64,000 nt of DNA from Dicyema japonicum (lineage: Eukaryota; Animalia; Dicyemida), in NCBI GenBank assembly GCA_011109175.1, contig RDEW01000025.1:527990-591989 (forward strand), given 5' to 3'. The notes beneath the pieces were generated by a model. That model saw nothing but the letters and a program-made list of their open reading frames with translations, had not been told where the DNA came from and searched no databases. A program made the translations under genes and the position numbers. Every line of letters starts with the position of its first letter. Within the stretch, counting starts at the first letter, position 1. Shown here one piece after another: positions 1 to 64,000 of this stretch.

Positions 1-210
1 TGCCCTCTATTCCATACACTATCGAAATATCTACAATCATACAGAAATTTTGAGCCGATGCCATGTCCAATGAGAAGAGCTGTTCAGGATTCTCGACCCC
101 ACCGGACTCGTCCTCTTCCTTGTCGGTCTGGGATCACTTAGTTAGATGAGAACTTTTATTTTTTTTCTCTTTGACCCAGTGATCCTGGGGTAATAATAAT
201 AATATTGATT
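1..210 (+). mobile_element. 3' end of APE-type LINE (family A, Ingi-like): Cys-containing ORF end and terminal hairpin tail
   Basis: Homologous to the reverse complement of ~52434-52626. The ORF ends ...PCPMRRAVQDS...GIT*, followed by GGGATCACTTAGTTAG...CCAGTGATCCTGGGG(TAA)n. Confidence 0.75.
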
Positions 211-11149: not shown

Positions 11150-13570
11150 CAATTTTATTTAAATTAAATAAATAAATTTTTGATAACTAAATAGTGGAAA
11201 GGACCGAAGAGCACTGGCGTAGATCAAAAAAACTAGGATCCCTTCTCGGTGACACCGAATTCGCTCAAACAGCCAGCGGCGTTCGCGGAGATCTCCAGTG
11301 CATGAGGTGATCCGGTTTCCAAGACGTCCGAAAAACTCTAGTGTAGAAGGGGAATAGGATCCGGAAGTCTCCATAGCAAGCGGAACAAATTGGACATTAT
11401 CGGGAAGGCCGCCGTATTTTTTCGAGTCTTGACGGATGCAGAGCAGGCCCTTGAAGCGCACTCGTGAAGATTGTTCGGGGCGAACGTTTCTGTACTTGAA
11501 GGGAAATATGGTCATCCCGTCCGGTCGTTTCCCGTCACTTCAGCATAATTCGACCGGTTCAAGAATGGACCAGTATCCAGCAGCATCCATAGCCCGTTTG
11601 ACAATCTTATTCAGAGCCTTGTGCCTTGGAAATCTTCCAGCGCTCCTCTTGCAGGCGAGAGGGTGCAGGCCATAACAGTCTATCAGGATGCCACATCGGC
11701 ACGGGTGAGGTACACATACTTTCAGTCCCAGCCGCAAAGAGATACCACTTCTAACGCATTCACTATCCAGAAAGGTGCCCAGAGCTCTATTTGGGATGAC
11801 GTTTAGCCAAGCTCCGCACTCAGGGGAAGCCCCTGAAAGCAAACAAAAGTGTCGGTGCTGATTGGCTGATTCCAGTAAGAGTCCAAATGATTTACAGCAC
11901 AATAAATTGTCCAGGTTTCGCTGGCAGTCTTGTGAAGGAGGCAGGGGGAAATTGGTGGCACTCCAGGCTTCTCGTGGGTGGGTTATGTCTTGGTAAATTG
12001 AGAATTCGGGTAGGGAGTGTAGAATCCTCTTGACATGGGAGCTACAGCCCACTAGCGATGATAGGTATGAAGTGAGAGAAAAGTCCACAGGGTTCCGAAT
12101 TCCAAGTCCTCCAAGTCTCACTGGCAGCGTGGCTTGCTTCCATGAGTAATCCTTGAACCGGACGTTGAAGATACGTTCCGCTGTCGTACGGAAGATCCGT
12201 TAATCTGTGCGAGTTGGTCATACAGGGTAAATAGGAAGCAGTCCTTAGGACATATGCAAGCCTCTGTACGTTGAGACTGTTTTTCAGGAGGAATAATGCT
12301 TTATGCATATCAAGTAGACACAAGCGGTTCAGAGTCTTCGAGTGACAGTCGTTTTTCACGTATAGCTCTTCCCATTGCATTTATGGTGCTCGGGGATCTG
12401 AGGAATATAAGTTCTTCATCGGTGTGGAAATACTTCCAGACAGTAAATTTCCGAAACATGACAAAGCTTTTGAATACTTCTCTGAAAGTCCGCAATTGTA
12501 GATTTCGCATTTAGTGTAATTTAATTCCAGTCCAGCCTCCAACAAAGCTGGAATTATCACTTCCAAATCCCGGAAAACAGTATCCGGGGGTCCTCCGAGG
12601 ATAGCATCATCCAGATACCATAGGTTGAGGGGCGAGCACGGAAGTTTGGTGATTTTCTCTATTGCAAGACAAAACAATAAGGTCAAGGGGATCTCCCTGT
12701 TGCACTCCAGAATACGAATGGATTAGGTAGTCTCCGAAAAGTAAAGATGAAGATAGACTGTATGACTGATTCATAAAATTGAAAATCTTAGGGCATCTCT
12801 CAACACACGCCTCCAGGATATTGTCCCTCCTTAGACTATTGAAGGCGTTCTTGATGTCCAGTTTGACTAGGACATGTCCCCGGGAATCTTCTATACTGTG
12901 GTTTAAGAATGTCCTCACTGAATGGACAGCGGCTTTGCATCCCAAGTGAATACCTTCGCTACTTGGGGGGTTCAAGAATTTTGTGACGAGTGGAATAGAA
13001 TGTTGGAGGCAATTTTAGCAGCCAGTCTTCTGAAGACAAACCCGAACGCAACTGGTCGTACTCCGTCTTCCTTTGTATCAAAGGCTATCAAATTGGCGGA
13101 AAACAGGACATGGCGGATAACTTCGGGAAAAAATCCAGACATGATCCGATTCATAAGTGAAGTAATTGAATTCGTAAGACGAAGTCCCTGGTCTCCTACG
13201 GACAAAGAGGTCAGATCCTTCAGGTAGCCAGGTCTCATTCCTTCGAGCCCGCCACAGCTACTAGGGGCGAAATTCCGTATTGCGAGGAGAACTTCATCGT
13301 TTGATGTAATCAGGGGACTCACTCCGGATGGGGAAGCGACTTGGCGTAGGTTTTGCATCTTCCTGCATAAACAGTAGTCGGAATTTCCTACGTTACTTCA
13401 AGAACCCGGAAATCTATTTGGGAAAAGGGTTACCCTTACAGCTATAGTAAATATGTGAATAATGAGATGAATTGAACTGAGTTAATTATCATGGTCATTA
13501 TGGGAACCGGATGTTTCAACTGCGAGACAAAACATCCTCGGATAGGACCGCGTATTTTGTTCTTTTTGAT
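11150..13570 (-). mobile_element. near-complete, frameshifted RLE-type non-LTR retrotransposon (CRE-like): RT + CCHC knuckle + PD-(D/E)xK endonuclease
   Basis: LDIKNAFNS, GVQQGDPL, WYLDD, LGGLGI, CRCG..DCYGLHPLAC...RH, (R)PDGMTIFPF and FVPLAMETSG; A/T-rich tail at ~11150-11180. Confidence 0.9.
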
Positions 13571-14719: not shown

Positions 14720-15480
14720 AGTATCCGCCATTATGGAACTCCCAATACTGAAGAGGAGAAGAAATGATTTTTTGGATGCCGGTCAGGTATTGGGCTACTC
14801 CTGGCTCAGTGGATCCAATGACACTTCTAGGAATTGAATAGGTCAAAAACAGAAATAAAACACTTCGATCAAGTAGGAATTTACAGCTAAATGCGAGAGA
14901 CATTATTAACCACTGGACAAATACGCTACTTAACGCTACGTGGTCTGAAACAAATATCATCAGCCAAATCTTGAATTCTTCGAGATATCGTATAATTCGA
15001 GAGGAATCTCCTTTTATTTTTTTTGGAGATAGAATTGCGTATACGTTTCCACGTAATACGGCAACCTCCTTTGATTTAAATACAGAATCAACCCCAGGAA
15101 GAATTTCTGCCATGGAGACAACAGAAGGTTAGAAGTTCATCATATCTTTGAACCTCAGAATAGCGCATTGCCACCTATGTCGCCATACTACATCAGCTGT
15201 TGATTTTCCAGTCCTGAGGTCACTTTGGCCTGCTCCCCCTTCCATGCGGTACAATGAAACGTTCTTATCCATTTTGTATCCCTACTTTAACATTCCAATA
15301 GCCCGCAATAAAGAGGAACGAGGAAGACTTGAGGCGAGATACGATCTTGGAAAGTTCCACTTAGAAAGCGGCCGACTCCTCAAAATCTTTGGAAACACGT
15401 ACACGTTAACGGAGAAGTTAGCTCTCCCAATCGTTAATTGAATGAAACTAATTGATTTTCCAAAAGCAATATAATGTGGA
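14720..15480 (-). mobile_element. decayed APE endonuclease of a LINE
   Basis: FIAGYWNVKVG (cf. GDFNAKVG) and the terminal SDHVAL motif, in correct order. Confidence 0.55.
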
Positions 15481-15677: not shown

Positions 15678-15897
15678 TTTAACCCACATGCGGGAACTTT
15701 TTACAATCTCATCAGACAAATGCCTCAATAGAATCACTCATTCATAGGATAAATTTCATCATTTGAGATAGTAAAAAACTAAATAAGAAATAACATACAA
15801 TTGCGACTACATGTCACACAAGACAACACAAGGTAGAATCGTGCAATTCATGTGTACTATCAATATTTAAAAATATATTATTTATCTAATAATAAAA
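15678..15897. repeat. ~220-bp direct repeat, copy 1
   Basis: TTTAACCCAC...TTTTACAATCTCATCAGACAAATGCCTCAATAGAATCAC...AATTTCATCATTTGAGA shared with 17646-17866. Confidence 0.9.
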
Positions 15898-17645: not shown

Positions 17646-17866
17646 TTTAACCCACGTTCGAACACTTTTTACAATCTCATCAGACAAATGCCTCAATAGA
17701 ATCACTTGTTCATAATATGAATTTCATCATTTGAGACAGTAAAAAAACTAAATAACAGAAAATTTCGCCTACATAAATGACACGAGACAAACACAAGACA
17801 AAAACGTGAATACATAAATGTATTATCAATATTAAAAAAATATATTATTAATCTCATAATAAAAAT
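17646..17866. repeat. ~220-bp direct repeat, copy 2
   Basis: Same orientation as 15678-15897, 1968 bp downstream. Confidence 0.9.
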
Positions 17867-17890: not shown

Positions 17891-18160
17891 CAGGTGATCC
17901 CGGTGTCCCTCAGCAGTCTTCGCATGCTCGGACTTGAAGGAAGTGCCTTCCAGGAGGAACTCCTCTGGATGGTTGTTACTAACTGTCCTTTTTGAATATA
18001 ATTTGGGATTACATCTGGCGCCACTAGAGATGGTGAACCACATGACGCACGCTAACAATTCAAGCTCCCTGGAGCCAAAGGAAAAGGAGGAACAGAAGAA
18101 ACAAACAAATAATCTTCAATTCAAATAACCACATAGCACCACACTAACGTTGGCACCACG
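17891..18160 (-). mobile_element. short internally deleted family-A element (head with pseudoknot + GGGATCACC tail motif)
   Basis: GTGGTGC leader, pyrimidine tract, pseudoknot core at 17984-18049, ~90 bp spacer, then CCGGGATCACCTG. Confidence 0.7.
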
Positions 18161-21928: not shown

Positions 21929-22557
21929 AATTATTTGACTAAAATTTTTTAAAAACTCACCATGATGATTTAAATCCAATTTTTTTAAACTTTTTGCTTT
22001 AAATTCAACCGTCCTTGCTTTAAACTCAGTCAGAAATAATAGAGTTAGTTACAAGTAACAGAGAAAACAGGGAAATTAATAGTGCACCATTCTGAAGTCG
22101 TAGAGGGGTGGGAATTGTGGAACAGTTCTTTTCCATGCAAAACTTTCCACCACAACAGGTGAACCGTATGACATCACACTAAGAATTGTAATGGTTTTAG
22201 CTGGGACGTTGGAAGACTACGCAAGGAGGATCCGGGAAATAGTGGAAAGTGGGATCACTTAATTAGTTAGACCGGACAAGTAGCTTTTATGCTTGAAACC
22301 ATTAACGGAACGACGAGAAATTGGTTTTTTAATTTATCTGAAGAGTTATGACACATAAGAAATTGATATTTTGTCATTCTGTTGAATAAATTTTACACTT
22401 TTAATTTTTCCGAATTTTTCAATCTCATAAAACTTCGCTTCATCACAAACACTTAGGAACTAACTTAAACACGTTTAATAAACATTCAAAATAAAAAATT
22501 TTCAGAAAATGTGACGGATTTGGCTGAGGAGAAATAGGCGACAAATTAAAAAGCCAC

Positions 22558-23010
22558 GTGGTGCTATGAGAGTAATTGGTTAAAAATTTATCTACCTTCC
22601 CTCTGATGGAGTCATTGGATCCACCTTACTTAGAAGACGCCGAATGCCTGGCTGGCATCCAAAAGGATCTAATTATTCATTCCACCGGGAGACAATTTCG
22701 TTTCCTGGCAACGAGTTCTCTAATTGACCTCAGCTTCCCGGACAAGTCTTCTGAATCACTGTTCTTGGGTGGAGGTTCTTCTAGAATGCGTCAGGATCAA
22801 GGAATTATTGTTTGCCTTTATCCCTGGTCTATGGAACAATTTTACTTATTTAATGTCGTCCGAATGTACGGTAATCTCGCTCCACCAAAATTACAGGTAG
22901 AGTTCCCTGATGTCATCCATAGTCATCAAAATGTATATTTAAAATCGTTTAATCATCAAGGAGGGGTAGGAGATCTTCATCATGATAAGGGGAACTTTGG
23001 AAATTGAAAT
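22558..23010 (+). mobile_element. family-A LINE 5' head (leader, pseudoknot core 22608-22670, 5' region to a degenerate 2A-position motif)
   Basis: Aligns with 25421-25660 and with the reverse complement of 51915-52364. Confidence 0.7.
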
Positions 23011-25420: not shown

Positions 25421-25660
25421 GTGGTGCCATCTGGCTACTTGATTAAGATTTCCCTAACTTCCCTCTGGTGGTGTCATTGAATCCACCTTACTCAGGAGAC
25501 GCTTTATTGCCTGGCCGGCATTCAGATGAATTTATTCATTCCACAAGGAAACTTTTTTCCTCACAAATGACGAGTTCTTGCATCGACCTCAACTTCCAGG
25601 ACAATGTCCTCTTGATCACTGTACTTGAATGAAGGTTCTGATGGAATGTGTCACGTTCAC
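25421..25660 (+). mobile_element. family-A LINE 5' head (pseudoknot core 25470-25533)
   Basis: GTGGTGCCATCTGGCTACTTG leader; homologous to 22558-22790. Confidence 0.7.
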
Positions 25661-27103: not shown

Positions 27104-30100
27104 TTAAATGACAGCAAAAAGTCGCATTTTCTTTCTGGAACAACTTTCTTGTACATTTTCAATAATTTTAATAGTGGAGATCTGTTCCCCATCAGAGGTT
27201 GTATTACAGTCGTAAACTCTGTACAAATGATAAGCCGATCCCATCATTATAGCTGTCTTCATTTCATTAAATGATATTGGCATAAAGTCCTTATCAGAAA
27301 AAATAGTTGATTTAACTTCAATATATGTTTTTTCTCCCCCAGACTTTTCAACAATAAAGTCATATGGCAGTCCTGATTCATTTATTTGGTTTAACCACTG
27401 AACACTTATCATATCATCCTCTGCTGTCTTTACTTTCTTCATTAAATAGTTGAACACAAACAACTCTCCACGATAACCAATGTCTAAATTATTTTGTTTG
27501 GGTATAGCATCAGGAATAACGTCCGGTAACTTGTCAGAAAGATCACTGTCCTCCTTGTTTACAAAAATCTTGGCCCTCTTAGATTCTCTTTGGTTCGGAT
27601 TACTTTGGTGCTTCCTCTTCTCATTCCTTACCTCATGCCAAGTGCTAAATTCAACACGTCTGTATTAACATAATAAATACTCATTATTCCGTCGAATTAA
27701 ACTATCCATGAAGATTGATAAATCATTCCTGAGTTCGTCATCATCAGTCAAGTGTGATGAAAGAACTCTGTTAAACTCACTGAGCAGCTCCACACAGTCA
27801 GTCCTTTGGTAGAAATGCTCAATGTGATTTATAGCATCAGATGAATTCATTTGACAATATATTGTGTTGGCTTCTGTTGACACACCAACCAATTCGGGTA
27901 TAACCACAGATTCGTCAAATCTCTCCGTTTTGAATGTATATCTTACAGAAAAACTGTCAACCTAGAGTAAACATTAAAACTACAGCTTTGAGACGAAGAT
28001 TGCGAACCTTTGCTCCACAGTCTTCCATTTTATACTTTTCATTCTTCAACCATCCACTCATATACTGTCTAATAAGAGGCAATAATCTATTCGTGTACAC
28101 ATAGAGAGACTCAAATTCAAAAACTGGTCCTTCCACATCAACAATCTCAGAAGAGACACATTGATTATATAAAGGAACTCCCAATTGTACTAAAATATCC
28201 CTTACTTCTACAAATCAGATAACGTCATACTCTTATTATCATATATTATACTATCAACCACCCTTAGATTACTAAATATGCCATAATCTCTACCAATAAC
28301 AACATCATCAAGCTAAAAGTGACTACCACATACAAACCTTACACAAACACGCATTAACAGGTATAAATGATAAATGCATCAGTTCCTTTCTAAGGAATTG
28401 CCAGGACATCCCCTCATTGGTCACTGCACTGTCTAAAGCACATAGCACTGAACACAAATCATTGAGGTCAGGCTTACTAGCACTAGCAATACGCTCTATA
28501 ATGGATAAACACTCCTTAACAGTCAAATACTCCTCAACTTTCATTAGTTTGAACAACTCCAACAACTACAGTCAATAAATAATAAAACCTCAGGATAAAC
28601 TGATTTCAACGAAACTCCACTCCTCAGTAAATAACGAGACAATATTCGTGCATTTTCGTGCCAAATTGCTTCACTTCCATACAAAAACAGACCATTTACA
28701 AGATTATTCTCATTATCCATTGATATTGGCACAAATATATACGGTTTATCTTCCACACAACGCTTTAGTTCGTCAGGGGAACATTTGGACAGTAATATCT
28801 AAAATAAAATAGAAATAAACTTATAAATCCTATCCATAGACGATACTGAAAGCATCATAGTCTTTGGAATCCTGAGATTATCCCTTATGGACCATTTATT
28901 CAATAACGAGAACAAACATGAGACAGAGAAGCAGTGAGAAATGCCAATAAAGTCCATAAACTGTTTGTTTAATTGAATATTATCGAATTCACAGTCCAAA
29001 TAGGGAACATTATTAGCAAACATATCTTCAACTTCCTTAGAACGCACAAACACTTCATTTGGTATCAACAGCATTAAATCCTCACATTCCCCCTCATCAG
29101 GAGAGAGTGGTATTCTTACACTAGGAATCCAACTATTATTCTTCAAAGTAAGCCCAAGGGAACTTAATTTACTTCCAGAGAACATCTAAAATAAGGGTAA
29201 TACTACATATTTGGAGTAATGAGTTGACCAATATTGATTTAAATGCTGTAATAGCTGTTTTAATCTCCCTCTATTTTCAGCGGAATCAGTGATAATGGAA
29301 TGTATTTCAAGACTTTCATAGTCTTCACATTCATCTGATTTAGGTATTCTTTCAATACAAAACCCATTAGAAATGCCCAAGTTATTCAAAAATTCAAAAA
29401 AAGAGATCAAATTTGAATTTACAATAGGCTTAGAGAAATATAATGAATGCAGTAATTTTAATTCCTTGAAGCAGTCAACCTGTGCCACCGATATTCCCTC
29501 CAAATTAATCAAATGGACAGTTTTCCTGTAATCCCCATAAACTAAATAGCTGTCCTCTGTCAAGATAGGAAGTTTCGACAAATCAACTTCAGATGGGGAT
29601 TTCCTCCATAAAATAAAAAATAATATAGCAGATGAAACAAAGAATTGTCGTTTCTCTTCAGGGACCACACCAACGTGAGCAAGTGAGGTATAACATAGCT
29701 ATTCATGAGTCCTTTCAAAGAGACAGATTCAATCCCCACCAACTTAATTAGTCCACGTGCTTGTGATTCTATGACCGGATCCGTGTCATCAAACAGACTT
29801 GGATGGATAAAGTTAATATTATCGACAATGTAAGACAAATCATCAAATATTTCGTCAATTTCATTAAACCCGTCATTATAAAACACATTATTAGACTCAA
29901 GTGATGTCAATCTTCCATTATTAAGAGGATAAATACACAAATGTCTCATATAATTAATTATATGATCTGTAATAAATCCAACAGATGACACGTGATGATA
30001 TAAACAGGACAACAGAGCACAAATATTTGGGTAGATTATCTAAGTTAGAAGTAATAATACCAATAATCATATCCCTTGTCCACTTGATCATATATTTGCA

Positions 30101-39282: not shown

Positions 39283-43651
<4,369 letters not shown>

Positions 43652-43779
43652 AATAAACTCGTTGTCTTGGTGATATTAATATAATAAATATTATTAATTT
43701 AAAGATAATAATTTAACAAAATTAAAATATTTTACAGGGTTTGTTTATTTATTTAATAACTTCAGAAAATTTAATTTAT

Positions 43780-44085
43780 TTATTTATTAACCCCGGTACA
43801 CCGAGAAAGAAGTTAAAGTAAAAAACTAATTAAGTGTATCCAGTTTCCACTTCAACAGAAACAGAGTCCATCCGGAATCAACATAAAGGATAAAAGACGT
43901 CTATACTTGCAATTGTGGAACTTCTCCAGCGGAGTGGGGGAGAGCAAATGATCCTTTTTCGTGCCGCCTGGCACTGGGCGCCACCTAGGCAGGTGGATCA
44001 CATGACGCCACTCTAATAGGAAGATGGAGGAGGAACAGACAAGCAAGCAGAAACTTCAACCAATTAGCCACGAAGGGCGCCAATA
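43780..44085 (-). mobile_element. short internally deleted family-A element (best-preserved HDV-like core 43949-44009 + full tail)
   Basis: Leader, GGCGTCATGTGATCCACCTGCCTAGGTGGCGCCCAGTGCCAGGCGGCACGAAAAAGGATCA, ~110 bp spacer, then tail CTCGGTGTACCGGGGTT(AATA)n. Confidence 0.8.
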
Positions 44086-48317: not shown

Positions 48318-50651
<2,334 letters not shown>

Positions 50652-51544
50652 TTTGATGATTTTATTTGATTATCTTAGTTTTATTGAATATTGATTTCTT
50701 CCATCCAAGATAATGTAGTTTTCTAAGCACGAACCATAATAACCTTTCACCAAAGCAATAGTACTTATAGATCCGCATGTTCACACACTTTATTTTTAGG
50801 GTAAAGAAGATTATGATAATTATCCTTTAAGGGAGTCAAGGTATATTCTTAACCTTTTTTTGGTTGCATGTGAGTCACGTTTTTACTTTCACTTTTTAAT
50901 TATTTCAATTTTATTATGAAAAAAAATCATTCATTGAGATCAAGGAAGCTTGATGAAGGCTCTTCTGAGAATGGAACTGAATGCCCCAGCTATCTTAGTC
51001 ATGGAGAACTTCTTCGTCTCTGATGCTCCCAGATTATGTGGACGATTGAGGATCACCCTCCCTATGGTTTTCGACAAGGATTTCCTTGGGAGACGCCGAA
51101 GAGAAAGGGAGGATCTAAATGAACTACGTGACCTTGCGTATGACATGTAGGAGGGAGATAACTGTTATAAGTTTCTCGTGTTGAATATGCTGTGTCATTA
51201 CCATGTCATAGTGAGAGTGCTAAATAATAAAAACATGATTTCGTATAATTAAATGAAGACATTCCAGACCAGAGGTTTCCCGACCTCAATCGGAAAAATA
51301 GACATTCATCTGCTGTTAACATCATTACTGCATGTCGACAAATTCAAGAAAAATGATAACCGACCGAATCCATAATCCGTCTGACAATCTCGTTTAGGGC
51401 ATTGTGTTTGAGAGATCTCACAGTACTCCTCCTAAAAGCAAGTGTTTAGTTTATAAAATACAATTCCCCTTATCGCACTTGCCATTTTCATCCAGTGAGC
51501 ATCGAAGGGCCCATCCCTAAGTTAGTTAGTTACTTAAGTGACCC

Positions 51545-52364
51545 CGGCTTCAATAATTTGTAGGAGACCAGCGGCTATTAAGTAAGACGCGCTTAGGTCC
51601 CTGCAGATTAGCGTGTTTTAAATCCAAATGAATCTGGTAGGTAGCTTGTAGAGATATAAACAATTGTCAATCGGAGAGAGGATAGGCGGGTTCTTATTGT
51701 TAGCTGTTCCAGTGGATCGTCCAGGGGGGAGGTGGTTAGAAATCTTATCTGAAATATTGCTTCCCAGGATGTGATTCCTGACCAAAGTAATAAAGCCTCC
51801 ACTCTTCCATGTTTTCTGTCCTTCTGAAATTGAGTATTCGAGTATGTGGGGGTTGGTTGCCGTGAGTTTAGTTTCATCTTGAAAAAGCTATATCCACTAA
51901 ATTTTGAAGAGATCTGGTCCAGGATTTTCCTCGACGTCTCCCCCAACACCATCCACGTCAATATGGTCGCAGGATAAGACTTTTAAATATTTCAAGTAGC
52001 AATGCCAACATTTAAGTGAGTCACGTGACATTTTCACGTGTCGCGGGTGAGTAAACACGTGTATTCAAAATAACACAGTAAATCAAATTAACTAATGCCC
52101 TGATCGTGATGTATTCTAGTAGAGCCCTATCTAGGTACTGTGATCCAGATGAGATTGTTTTAGAAGCCAAAGTCTATGCCAGAACTCATCGCCAGGGAGC
52201 GAAATAGTCACTCTGTGGAATTAAGAGATGGATCTTTTTGAATTCCAACCAGAATGGGTGTCTCCTGATTTAGGTGGATCACATAACGCCACTCTATTAG
52301 AAAAGGGGAGAAGAACAGACAAAACAAACAGAAATGTTAAATCAAGTAGCCATATGGTACCACG
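51545..52364 (-). mobile_element. family-A LINE 5' portion: leader, HDV-like core (52230-52290), 2A motif, APE endonuclease (decayed)
   Basis: GGDVEENPGP at 51915-51944, immediately followed by APE-type ETKLT...KSGGFITLVR. Confidence 0.85.
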
Positions 52365-52433
52365 ATCCAACCACTCGGCTTAAAAATAAAATTCACTAAC
52401 AACTAATCTACCTGGTCAAAACTTTTACATTAT

Positions 52434-52825
52434 TTTTACCCGAGGATCACTGGGTCAAAGAAAAAGAAATAAAGTTCTCAACAAACTAAGTAATCCCAGA
52501 ACTACATTGGAGAGGACAAGTCAGACGGGATTGAGAATCCTGTACTGTTCTTCTCATCGGACATGGCATCGGCTCGAGCTTTCTGTATGATTGTAGATAT
52601 TTTGATAATTTATGGAACAAAGGGCAGCTCGGTAGACAGACGCCTTTTAAAGTTTTTGTTGTAATTCGATTAAAAAGTTTTCAAAGGGCTGGATTTTGTG
52701 TCTGGTCCAATTAACTTTGTTGCAGCCTCCTGGATTGCGGATAGTTTCAAGGAAGAGGCACGTGAAATCTGCATTTCCCACGAAGGACTTGCATACATTA
52801 TCGAGGGAGACAGAGCTGTCTTTTT
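52434..52825 (-). mobile_element. family-A LINE 3' fragment with tail
   Basis: SPSIMYASPSW...PCPMRRTVQDS...TCP..GIT* followed by the tail hairpin. Confidence 0.8.
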
Positions 52826-52827
52826 TA

Positions 52828-52990
52828 CGTGGTAAATTGGTTGAATATATTGAAGTTTTCTGTTTGTTTGCCTGTTCCTCCTATCTCTTCCTATTAGAGT
52901 GGCGTCATGTGATCCACTTGTCTAGGTGACGCCCAGTGCCAGGACGGCACGAAAAGTTTACTTTAACTTTTTTCTCGGTGTATCCGGGGT
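52828..52990 (+). mobile_element. minimal head+tail family-A element
   Basis: Head nearly identical to the 43780-44085 element, joined after GAAAAG directly to TTTACTTTAAC...CTCGGTGTATCCGGGGTT. Confidence 0.8.
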
Positions 52991-53149
52991 TGTTAAATTC
53001 AATGTGAATAAACTAAGTTTATGGCTTTGGCAAAAATCAATCGACAGCTAGCCCGGAGAAGTCGGTGTTGACCGTATTCACGACAAACAAAAGATTAGGA
53101 AAAAATATAAATTGACGTCACACTGGATGGGGAAAATATCCCGCAAAAT

Positions 53150-53620
53150 TAATTCCAGAAAATCCTATGAGTTACCTTTGACACCTTCTTAACCTTTCCA
53201 AAACACGTAGAAAATATGTTATTGACTTGTACGAAGAAAATCAACTTCCTGAAGGCGTTCTTGGGAAACCAAGAGACAAAAAAGATCTGATTAAACTGGG
53301 TGTCATACACAAACAGTTCATCGAGTCTACAATAAGATACGCATGTAATGTCTGGGGATCTAACCTTTCTGCAACGAATTTGGACAAGATCTGAACTGAA
53401 GTCGTTAAGTACGATCAATTCCTCTTCAATTAAGCAGACCGGTGCTAAATTCTCAGTGAAAACGGAAAGCGGGAAAAATTATCGGTCTCTGTCCAAAGAA
53501 TGGAAGATGTTCTTATAATGTGGGAGAATGATGCACTTTTAGGTTTCTGTGGATGGAAAGGTGGATGGGAGAACTGAAATGTGCTGACCATTGGGAATGG
53601 AATCCGGTGGGATCACGGAA
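53150..53620 (+). mobile_element. family-A LINE 3' fragment
   Basis: VTFDTFLTFPKHV, KQFIESTIRYACNVWG, Cys-rich end, then GGGATCAC. Confidence 0.7.
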
Positions 53621-58970: not shown

Positions 58971-59026
58971 TTTCGAAGACAGTTCTAAGGTATTGATAGT
59001 AGTTTATTGACTTTACACAAGTTATT

Positions 59027-59454
59027 GTGTTCCGTAGTTTATTGCCTTTGTTTCGTTTAAAAAACTACATAGATGGAAAGAGACCTGACGGGATGACCCT
59101 TTTCCCCTTCACGTCTGGAAGATCTTTTGTCTGGGACGCAACTTGTGTAGACACGTTCTCAATCACGAATATTTTCAAATCGGTTCAGACACCTGGAGCA
59201 ACTGCTTCGACTGCGGAGAACCTAAAAATCAAGAAATATTCTTACTTCGGGGACCGCTACTGATTTACTCTGTTGCGACCGAATCATCGGGAGCCGTTGG
59301 TCCAATGACGGCTGAGTTCTTGCGAGAACTCGGAGGAATGCTTGCCAGAAAGAAAAGGGATCAACGAGAATGGTTATGGCTGAGACAAAAGATTGGAATG
59401 GTCATACTCCGAGGGAACTCGTTCGCAATCCACGCAGCCGGCTTCCTCAACTGA
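59027..59454 (+). mobile_element. CRE-like endonuclease/3' end fragment
   Basis: GKRPDGMTLFPFTSGRSFVWDATCVDT...VATESSGAVGP...RGNSFAI*. Confidence 0.85.
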
Positions 59455-62722: not shown

Positions 62723-64000
62723 ACGATCGACCTCATCATTCTCATCTGATAGAGTTTCGATGGGGGAGAAAGTCTTAAACAGATAATTTCAGTTGTAAAA
62801 GTCGTCTCTAAGGTCTTCAGTCTCGTATAGACTTCTATTCGGGGGTAATCGCAAAGACTGGGAATGACTCTCGATGTCCAATTAAATTTGAAGAGCACTT
62901 CTTGAGCCTCCTTATCGATTTCCATAATACAGTAGGAAGTATTGTTCGTAGCTTTTCTGAGCAAAACTTCCCTACGTCCTTTGTTGTGTTTTGTGATGTT
63001 CCGCGTGATTTCTTTGTTCAGTTTTGATATCCTTTCAGTTACGTCCACTGATTGTCTTGCGAAATTCCTCAGATTATTTCTCGTTTTGATTAGATCTCGC
63101 GTTTCAGCATCAATTGGGTGTGTTGGACGTTGAGGACGACCCGTCGGAATGTATCTTTTGCGAGCTCGGAGTATAATCTCGTTGAGGTATTTGATAGCAG
63201 CGTCGATAAATCAGAAGTTCTCTATCCGGAAGGCCTGGAAGTGTAGTTCGGTAAAATGTGTGAAGGTGGGCCATGTTGAGTTTGAGAAGTTCACATTAGT
63301 TCTCGGAGTGTTAATTAACTTATGTTTTTGTGAGATCCTCATGAAGATCGTGTTATAGTCGTATATAAAAACCCATGAAATAACAGCCGTAAAAAAATAT
63401 CTGATGAAGTAGGGGAGTCGGCTCGGCAGGAAGGAGTCCTTGTGTTTTCTTGGATTATTGAGAATGGCCAAGTCGTCAAAAGTGTCGGATATGAGGGCTC
63501 CCCGTTGATCCAGTTGTTGGTCAGCATACCATTGTGAGCTTTTCGAATTTAAGTCACCTCCCATTAGCGTGCTTTCTAACCTGGTGAATCGATTGAGTTC
63601 GGGGCTGTAGCCTCTTGGGCATAACGGTGGAGGGGGTATGTACATATTGACATCTGTCAATCGAAGGGAGGGTAGGCACATTCTCAGATTTAGATGTTCA
63701 GTGTGTCGTCTTGGCGGGAGGGGACCGGGATATCGTCCGAAATATTTCTGGCCATTATATGCTTCCTGATTAGAGCAATAAGGCCTTCTCCTTTCCATGA
63801 CCTCTGTCTCGTCTGAAAACGGAGCATCCCCGATGTTGGGGGTTGGTCGCCCTGGGTTAAGTTTCGTCTCTTTAAAAAGAGCTACAGTTTAACCTCTTTT
63901 TGGAGCGGACCTCGAGGGTGGAACACCTCTGTTTTTGATACACCCTCGGGATTTGGAACACTTCGAAAATTTCATCAGAAAATTAATAAAATCCTTACAA
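62719..64000 (-). mobile_element. LINE APE endonuclease and linker (decayed; runs off the window)
   Basis: VALFKETKLN, NMYIPP, GGDLNSKSSQW, RG..ISDTFDDLAILN. Confidence 0.85.

Follow-up and report, generated by a model that had tools for sequence, protein, structure and literature searches.

The window, by which we mean the whole 64,000-nt stretch of Dicyema japonicum DNA analysed here, is animal DNA with very short introns, as seen in a gene at 48.4-50.7 kb that is split by introns of a few tens of bases. The published genome of this species has a mean intron of 38 bp and contains 49% repeats (PMC6736024). Two further coding segments were recognised on the minus strand: a protein-kinase gene (Pfam Pkinase) at 42400-43700, and an open reading frame (ORF) at 27107-27664 that gives a strong match to the NO VEIN C-terminal domain (Pfam NOV_C, E 6e-20) and presumably belongs to a host gene.

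The window also holds several heads of LINE-type elements, each with a core of 61-70 nt for which a fold like that of the hepatitis delta virus (HDV) ribozyme had been proposed. Six heads were described as homologous in the original prediction, and all six were recovered by an nhmmer profile (E 1e-13 to 3e-21) and by a covariance model (55-87 bits). A seventh, decayed core was absent from that first list (copy G; nhmmer E 9e-10; covariance model 36 bits, E 1.5e-7). A scan of the window with the covariance model matched only these same seven copies, designated A to G:

14753-14837, minus strand: core of copy G, decayed (nhmmer and covariance model)
17984-18049, minus strand: core of copy A (covariance model, span 17972-18062)
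22608-22670, plus strand: core of copy B (covariance model, span 22596-22682), with a leader starting at 22560
25470-25533, plus strand: core of copy C (covariance model, span 25458-25545), with a leader starting at 25423
43949-44009, minus strand: core of copy D (direct reading; covariance model, 87 bits)
52230-52290, minus strand: core of copy E (covariance-model span 52218-52302), a LINE head with an ORF downstream and a leader starting near 52361
52901-52956, plus strand: core of copy F (covariance model, span 52889-52974), of the same family as D

The type of element was read from the sequences that follow the heads, and from copy D, which is complete.

51915-51938, minus strand: 2A 'StopGo' motif GDVEENPGP, approximately 350 nt downstream of the E core and followed by an APE-like ORF
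43763-44081, minus strand: copy D as a whole element of 319 nt, a complete short head+tail (SINE-like) element and not a LINE

LINEs of the APE type with a 2A peptide are characterised by an ORF whose N-terminus carries the motif D(V/I)ExNPGP (Odon et al. 2013, PMC3708506). Such a motif is present downstream of E, where the ORF continues into an APE endonuclease: the part following the 2A resembles an APE fragment at 63634-63876 (tblastn E 8e-7), which itself matches Pfam Exo_endo_phos_2. A decayed 2A was found at the matching place in copy B, near 22960-23000, and an APE-like ORF starts at ~26150 in copy C. Because of these reading frames, the heads are assigned to LINEs encoding a 2A peptide and an APE endonuclease, with ORFs too decayed for assignment to a clade (Ingi/Vingi or other). 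An 8-bp target-site duplication, AAGTTATT, brackets copy D at 44089-44082 and 43762-43755, and the 3' end of this copy is a (TAAA)n-like tail. Target-site duplications were also sought for A, B, C, E and F, and none was convincing. In copy F the core is whole up to the J4/2 junction, where an internal deletion fuses it to the tail, so that the P2' strand is gone; the 5' end of its leader is damaged. The protein-kinase gene lies directly downstream of D on the same strand, and D could contribute to the 5' region of this gene.

Other repeats accompany the heads. An APE endonuclease ORF at 63214-63888 on the minus strand (Pfam Exo_endo_phos_2) has the N-terminus ..KETKLNPGRP, possibly a decayed 2A; its head would fall past the end of the window. 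Pieces of a different LINE are found at 11162-13397 (minus strand) and 59003-59451 (plus strand), with a weak Pfam RVT_1 match for the reverse-transcriptase piece, and a C-terminal CxCG...H...C plus DGKRPDG motif makes a candidate restriction-like endonuclease domain. The decayed head G sits ~1.4 kb upstream of the 11162-13397 fragment, on the same strand, and behind it comes what may be the remains of a 2A (VIDANPGF, near 14520-14500). A 120-nt direct repeat occurs twice on the minus strand, at 15700-15783 and 17664-17752; its two copies are 88% alike, and one of them lies just downstream of head A. They give weak matches to C/D-box snoRNAs (snoZ266/SNORD70, 25-26 bits, below the gathering score), and may be a snoRNA-like pair or a mimic.

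Abundance was estimated from contigs of four runs (dated 2019) placed on 48400-53300. These runs are genomic DNA, as depth is flat across the gene, tiny introns included, and zero intron joints were seen. Compared with a flat depth of ~331 for the single-copy gene, summed word depth, which is not a copy number, was ~34,000 for the E head and ~1.49 million for the F head. The D/F family is clearly very abundant, with thousands of genome-equivalents in k-mer depth, a depth sum again not being a copy number. Most relatives of F continue like D, with a D-like middle part, as seen from contig loose ends at 52955/52956; the F deletion stands out among the best-supported loose ends, with 97-131 contigs. 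Between E and F, at 52400-52830, lies a second, unrelated repeat family (summed word depth 120,000-235,000 versus 331 for single-copy sequence), of which an inverted copy, 83% alike over 168 nt, forms the start of the window (1-168). Further copies of the head were looked for outside the window by two routes. With proteins, the head-to-2A ORF of B, the LINE APE ORF and a 64-aa ORF across D had no homologues in protein collections, and an exhaustive search with the APE fragment of C gave just two spurious matches (BNR and Rib domains). The LINE ORFs of the window are too decayed for such searches, and ORFs of this genome are seemingly missing from the collections. With DNA patterns, scans of metagenome and prokaryote-genome collections gave 40 loci; none of the 40 was recognised by the covariance model, and they are chance matches.

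HDV-like ribozymes are defined by a nested double pseudoknot with the strand order P1-P2-P3-L3-P3'-P1'-P4-P4'-J4/2-P2' (PMC4908430). Direct reading of the sequence of copy D found all the helices exactly as they had been drawn:

44009-44004 with 43982-43977, minus strand: P1, 6 bp, one of them G-U
44000-43995 with 43954-43949, minus strand: P2, 6 bp
43994-43992 with 43985-43983, minus strand: P3, 3 bp
43974-43970 with 43965-43961, minus strand: P4, 5 bp

The junctions of D are ATG for J1/2 (3 nt), TGCCTA for L3 (6 nt), CA for J1/4, and GAAAAA for J4/2, after C43961. The strand order had been said to be kept, wholly or in part, in every copy. It is perfect in D (6+6+3+5 bp) and mostly kept in B, A, C and E; G is decayed, F is without P2' owing to its deletion, and P3 is mostly short. 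Copy B pairs at 5/6 positions in P1, 6/6 in P2 and 5/5 in P4, with a P3 of 1 bp, and copies A, C and E pair at 5-6/6 in P1 and 4-5/6 in P2, with P4 present. The claim that P4 changes while remaining paired was confirmed, since all seven copies have a hairpin at this place, made from four distinct stem sequences (GTGCC, ATGCC, ATTC, ATGTAAT), copy A having swapped its P4 for a different 7-bp hairpin. Likewise, the J4/2 signature of a C and then a run of A was found after P4 in all seven copies: the C occurs within 0-2 nt of P4 and is followed by (G)AAAA. This C is the candidate catalytic residue; in D and F it doubles as the last drawn pair of P4, which would need to open. In copy F, the internal strand GGCGTC and the P1' strand GACGCC are exact reverse complements and non-palindromic: P1 is a true inverted repeat. 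P1 and P2 are nevertheless built on near-palindromes (GGCGCC, GATC), which eases the drawn pairings.

The centre of the fold departs from the HDV type. As the original prediction had remarked, L3 is short and there is no GG after P1' to make a P1.1. Candidate P1.1 pairs are UG:CA (2 bp) in D and F, UU:GA in B and CU:AG in A, with none in C, E and G, and 2-nt matches of this kind are expected by chance. P3 reaches 3 bp only in D and F (and A at best), and is 1-2 bp elsewhere, an A-A pair breaking it in B, C, E and G. A T private to F falls in P3, at 52918; C makes up ~98% of the depth there, which restores P3, and this is the only strongly supported core difference between F and its family. The HDV-type combination of a 3-bp P3 with conserved L3 nucleotides was not found: L3 sequences diverge widely and bear no relation to the conserved core of R2 and HDV, and a G in L3, which is important in an R2 ribozyme (PMC3774820), occurs only in D, F and G. 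Finally, the first P1 pair is G-C rather than the usual G-U.

Statistical support for the fold is weaker than first stated. The covariation claimed for the helices did not survive: in a seven-copy alignment 158 of 500 shuffles attained its score, and of the 20 pairs just 3 change on both sides. The variants offered as P1 covariants are one-sided wobble/Watson-Crick changes only, and G-U pairs, said to fit the sense strand alone, show no clear strand bias (13 G-U versus 9 A-C cells). In the same alignment 80% of cells pair, versus 28-40% with slid partners, and compensated changes occur at column pair 24-80 in P2 and at column pair 51-69 in P4. In copy C, a change from G-C to A-U in P2 is compensated in P2'. 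A competing local hairpin (GTGGCGTC/GATCCAC) was considered and rejected, as it never covaries and is broken by this very change. A loose descriptor of the HDV order matched from 88 starting points in the 64-kb window, which amount to some tens of loci; strand-order topology alone is therefore cheap. With a weighted pair score of 51, D comes top in the window, only just ahead of the highest score among 30 shuffled windows (50). RNAalifold applied to the heads recovered P1 and P4 only, and minimum-free-energy z-scores, calculated on the nested part, were unremarkable except for F. Rfam holds the HDV ribozyme and HDV-like families, including CPEB3 and drz-Agam. None of the HDV family matched over the window at the gathering score, and around all seven copies neither an HDV-like nor another relevant family matched at E<=10, which is weak evidence because these models ignore pseudoknots.

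It could be, then, that the core has no kinship with ribozymes and is an internal promoter, a protein-binding DNA or a plain pair of hairpins (P1 and P4), its HDV-like drawing being a coincidence aided by the near-palindromes GGCGCC, GATC and the E-box-like CATGTG. The frequency of topological matches by chance, the narrow advantage of D over shuffled windows, the non-significant covariation, the lack of an Rfam match and the recovery of P1 and P4 only by RNAalifold would all agree with this. Moreover, head+tail derivatives need a promoter, as which Pr77 of the trypanosomatid element L1Tc serves (PMC3383444), and CACGTG/CATGTG motifs are found at the start of the leader and in J1/2-P2. The E-box-like motif is missing from B, C and G, however. 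A coincidence would also have to accommodate the true inverted repeat of P1 in F, the compensated changes of P2 and P4, and an unrelated hairpin at P4 in A, as well as the conjunction of helix order, C/A-run junction and L1Tc-like context, which is much to ask. We consider this explanation rather unlikely.

Nor is the conservation better explained by a protein reading frame, an alternative raised along with the original prediction. A frame running through the core into the 2A can be traced in B, where 143 codons (22576-23004, plus strand) stay open across leader and core as far as the decayed 2A, and a 140-codon ORF of G also spans the core. However, the frame of G is shifted relative to that of B within the core, D and F carry a stop there, and indels between subfamilies are not multiples of three (L3 is 6 or 7 nt, and the distance from P1' to P2' is 22-28 nt). 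In B and E, a conserved ATG that precedes the 2A by ~35-40 codons is a likelier start, and the B peptide is without homologue in protein collections. Coding constraint on the core thus appears very improbable. In copy B, the ATG of the open frame overlaps the first G of P1; we judge the open frame to be chance (~0.1 once all frames and copies are counted), but with it read-through translation into the 2A would be possible.

As had been claimed, the core is preceded by a conserved leader, and this was found in every copy, with 47-109 nt between its first conserved hexamer and the internal strand of P1. The longest, in copy A (109 nt), has a duplicated start. In D, the leader divides as follows:

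44076-44081, minus strand: terminal strand, GGCGCC, the first six nucleotides of D, its position being set by the target-site duplication
44010-44075, minus strand: remainder of the leader, a conserved block (..CGTGGCTAATTGGTTGAAG) and then a polypyrimidine tract ending in ..TATTAGAGT, as seen in head alignments

The conserved 5' block reads GT GGYGCY AT n TGGCTAMTTGRTTRAAG, and the length of the polypyrimidine tract differs between subfamilies. Two ideas about the leader were discarded. A likeness to known small RNAs (U2, 5S, U1 and U6, compared by eye) is weak and has no Rfam support, and the polypyrimidine-AG is not a splice acceptor common to the family, as the AG is missing in B and C. 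The leaders of A (18165-18150, minus strand) and B (22553-22565, plus strand) begin with CCACGTGGTGC, and that of F (52826-52833, plus strand) with TACGTGG; the palindrome CACGTG at the 5' edge of these elements may reflect a preference for certain target sites, serve as a promoter motif or be there by chance.

The position of the leader matters for any cleavage. When HDV-like ribozymes reside in LINEs, the cut before the first P1 nucleotide coincides with the element's own 5' end or lies upstream of it. This is not the case here if P1 is made with the internal strand: the target-site duplication of D sets its 5' end 72 nt upstream of the predicted cut (44009/44010). None of the seven window copies begins at this cut, and no pile of contig ends was found at the corresponding place in F (52900/52901) among the best-supported loose ends listed. 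The reverse-transcribed RNA carries the leader. Since the leader is inherited by every copy, including D with its fixed 5' end, RNA cut at the internal site is not the transposing RNA. R2 and L1Tc use the cut RNA as their template (PMC3774820, PMC4035085), and the retention of the leader is therefore a real departure.

An ordinary, active HDV-like ribozyme could still be accommodated if it cut just 5' of GGCGTC, at the internal site, removing the leader from most transcripts, with an uncut minority transposing or the cut RNA being translated. The internal strand has the textbook layout, with a 3-nt J1/2 and with P2 and P3 directly adjacent, and its pairing with P1' (6/6 in A, C, D and F, 5/6 in B and E) equals or exceeds that of the terminal strand. 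Work cited in PMC4908430 links HDV-like ribozymes to translation initiation of LINE mRNAs. Yet D is non-coding and keeps the fold, so translation would not be its sole use. Leaderless copies should also abound, if the cut RNA served as template as in R2 and L1Tc, whereas all seven copies carry the leader, and contig ends do not pile up at the cut among the best-supported loose ends listed, where the F deletion is marked by 97-131 contigs. We regard internal cutting of this kind as unlikely.

The terminal GGCGCC of D is identical to the P1' strand and differs by one base from the internal P1 strand, GGCGTC. Contig loose ends give GGCG[C/T]CATGTGGTGCT as the 5' consensus of the D family, and its first 11 bases (GGCGYCATGTG) repeat the start of the core, GGCGTCATGTG, at 10-11 of 11 positions (p ~0.03). 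Similarity between leader and core is also significant in A (p 0.0035) and B (p 0.02), and is not so in D, E and F taken singly. Leaders of the older subfamilies start with GTGGTGCY; the D family has eight additional bases, which are the first eight of the core and are joined at the shared GTG. The terminal strand could be a fossil of a cut 5' end, an alternative P1 or a decoy.

The fossil reading fits a template switch of the reverse transcriptase onto an RNA whose 5' end lay exactly at the predicted cut. The 8-nt extension of the D family, GGCG[C/T]CAT, ends exactly at this cut, and its GTG microhomology joint is what such a switch would be expected to leave, a point in favour of internal cutting. 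Against it, the extension would be a single event at the level of the family, and the similarity is significant in A and B too.

The alternative-P1 reading fits a ribozyme that would cut at the very first base of the element, with P1 made of the terminal hexamer (44081-44076 in D) and P1' (43982-43977), and with the leader, internal strand included, as a long J1/2. A 5' end located by the cut is consistent with the terminal strand in D only, where the target-site duplication makes the first G of GGCGCC the end; this hexamer matches P1' perfectly by Watson-Crick pairing (chance for a random hexamer ~2e-4). The terminal:P1' duplex reaches -14.3 to -14.6 kcal/mol in D and A, equal to or better than internal:P1', and this arrangement would account for the retention of the leader. 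It has precedents in R2, with J1/2 loops of 216-498 nt in the silkmoth and P1 strands upstream of the remaining ribozyme (PMC3774820), and in Agam-2 ribozymes, which are activated by helices within J1/2 (PMC4908430). In B, C and E, however, the terminal strand meets P1' with a C-A mismatch (5/6, 5/6 and 4/6 pairs), where the internal strand pairs. In A, B, C, E and F the terminal hexamer does not open the element, as at least two conserved nucleotides (GT, often CACGT) stand before it, and the strong conservation of the internal strand would be left unexplained. Cutting at the first base seems to us quite improbable.

The decoy reading fits a terminal strand that would pair with the internal P1 strand and block the fold. 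In the predicted minimum-free-energy fold of the full D head, these two strands do pair, and the calculated energies of the three possible duplexes (terminal:internal, terminal:P1' and internal:P1') are comparable in A-E. The head might even be a two-state ribozyme of the HDV type, in which two interchangeable 5' strands of P1, one in the first six bases and the other ~50-110 nt inside, would compete for a single P1'; such a switch must be called distinctly doubtful.

Among known systems, the closest appears to be the Pr77 sequence of L1Tc/NARTc with its ribozyme L1TcRz, followed by the ribozymes of R2. As in L1Tc/NARTc, of the trypanosomatid ingi/L1Tc clade, an HDV-like fold would lie in the first ~80-150 nt of an APE LINE encoding an N-terminal 2A, and as in NARTc and SIDER elements, the head is kept by short non-autonomous derivatives (PMC4035085, PMC3383444, PMC3708506). 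Flanking sequence modulates or attenuates cleavage in the L1Tc system, and its hallmarks are tandem or duplicated in SIDER2 (PMC4035085, PMC3383444, PMC3708506). In contrast to the heads described here, in which a leader of 47-109 nt is retained before the fold, L1TcRz cuts at +1 of the element and Pr77 is its very 5' end. The host also differs, being an animal (a dicyemid) and not a kinetoplastid, and the likeness is one of organisation, with no sequence similarity claimed.

R2 and the R2-derived SIDE elements resemble the present heads in having a ribozyme at the 5' end of a LINE, a P4 that is variable or dispensable, and internally deleted non-autonomous copies that keep the ribozyme and the 3' end (PMC3774820, PMC3414825). 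J1/2 loops in R2 extend to hundreds of nucleotides, and the cut can fall upstream of the element junction by as much as 36 nt (PMC3774820, PMC3414825). Unlike these heads, R2 inserts site-specifically in the 28S rDNA, is transcribed together with the rRNA, and has an endonuclease of the RLE type; it also keeps a P1.1/P3/L3 core close to that of HDV, whereas this core is missing here and the Rfam HDV-family models remain unmatched. The large HDV-like ribozymes of the drz-Agam-2 type, from RTE LINEs, have a structured J1/2 domain (P1.2) that controls activity, and so provide a precedent for a long insert between P1 and P2 (PMC4908430). That insert activates the ribozyme, whereas the one considered here would hold a second, competing P1-like strand, and no P1.2 helix with covariation support was seen.

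The proposal that the fold is a ribozyme, or derived from one, thus stands in part. Helix order, J4/2, the LINE 2A context and retention in a derivative fit it; the Rfam searches, the covariation and the non-canonical P1.1/L3 core lend it no support. The part that survives is the suggestion of a variant or regulated fold, given the leader in every copy and the distance between the D end and the predicted cut. The best reading is that of an HDV-type pseudoknot which may have been attenuated or re-sited. More fully, we hold it to be an evenly balanced proposition that the core is a ribozyme-derived pseudoknot of the HDV type in the 5' UTR of 2A/APE LINEs, kept in abundant derivatives behind an inherited leader with a second P1-like strand.

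According to this proposal, the core would be an RNA module of the LINE 5' UTR that the short head+tail derivatives also carry. It would most likely descend from the 5'-end ribozyme by which such LINEs release their RNA from upstream transcripts. In this family the module no longer stands at the 5' end, the leader before it being copied into each new insertion. The start of this leader, a near copy of the P1/J1-2 strand, could pair either with the internal P1 strand or with P1', and might thereby restrain the ribozyme or, if cleavage takes place, shift the cut to the first base of the element. The module would persist as a structured 5'-UTR element, and we propose that non-coding derivatives keep it because it is needed in cis.

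[quoted passage not shown] What is new here is that the fold stands behind an inherited leader, and that the element opens with a second copy of a P1 strand. If the fold still cuts, it would be an example of a LINE ribozyme that has been re-sited or throttled. If it no longer cuts, a ribozyme fold would have been retained, even in non-coding derivatives, in a different role, with RNP assembly, stability and translation as examples. Were the two-state reading true, the choice of pairing would decide whether a transcript is trimmed at its own 5' end from host read-through, giving a whole template, or decapitated, or left uncut; a built-in switch of this sort is not known to be described for LINE ribozymes, and would be present in thousands of copies in a tiny animal genome. 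The combination known from L1Tc, of an HDV-like head, a 2A peptide and short derivatives, would also be extended from kinetoplastids to an animal, which suggests that it is either old or convergent.
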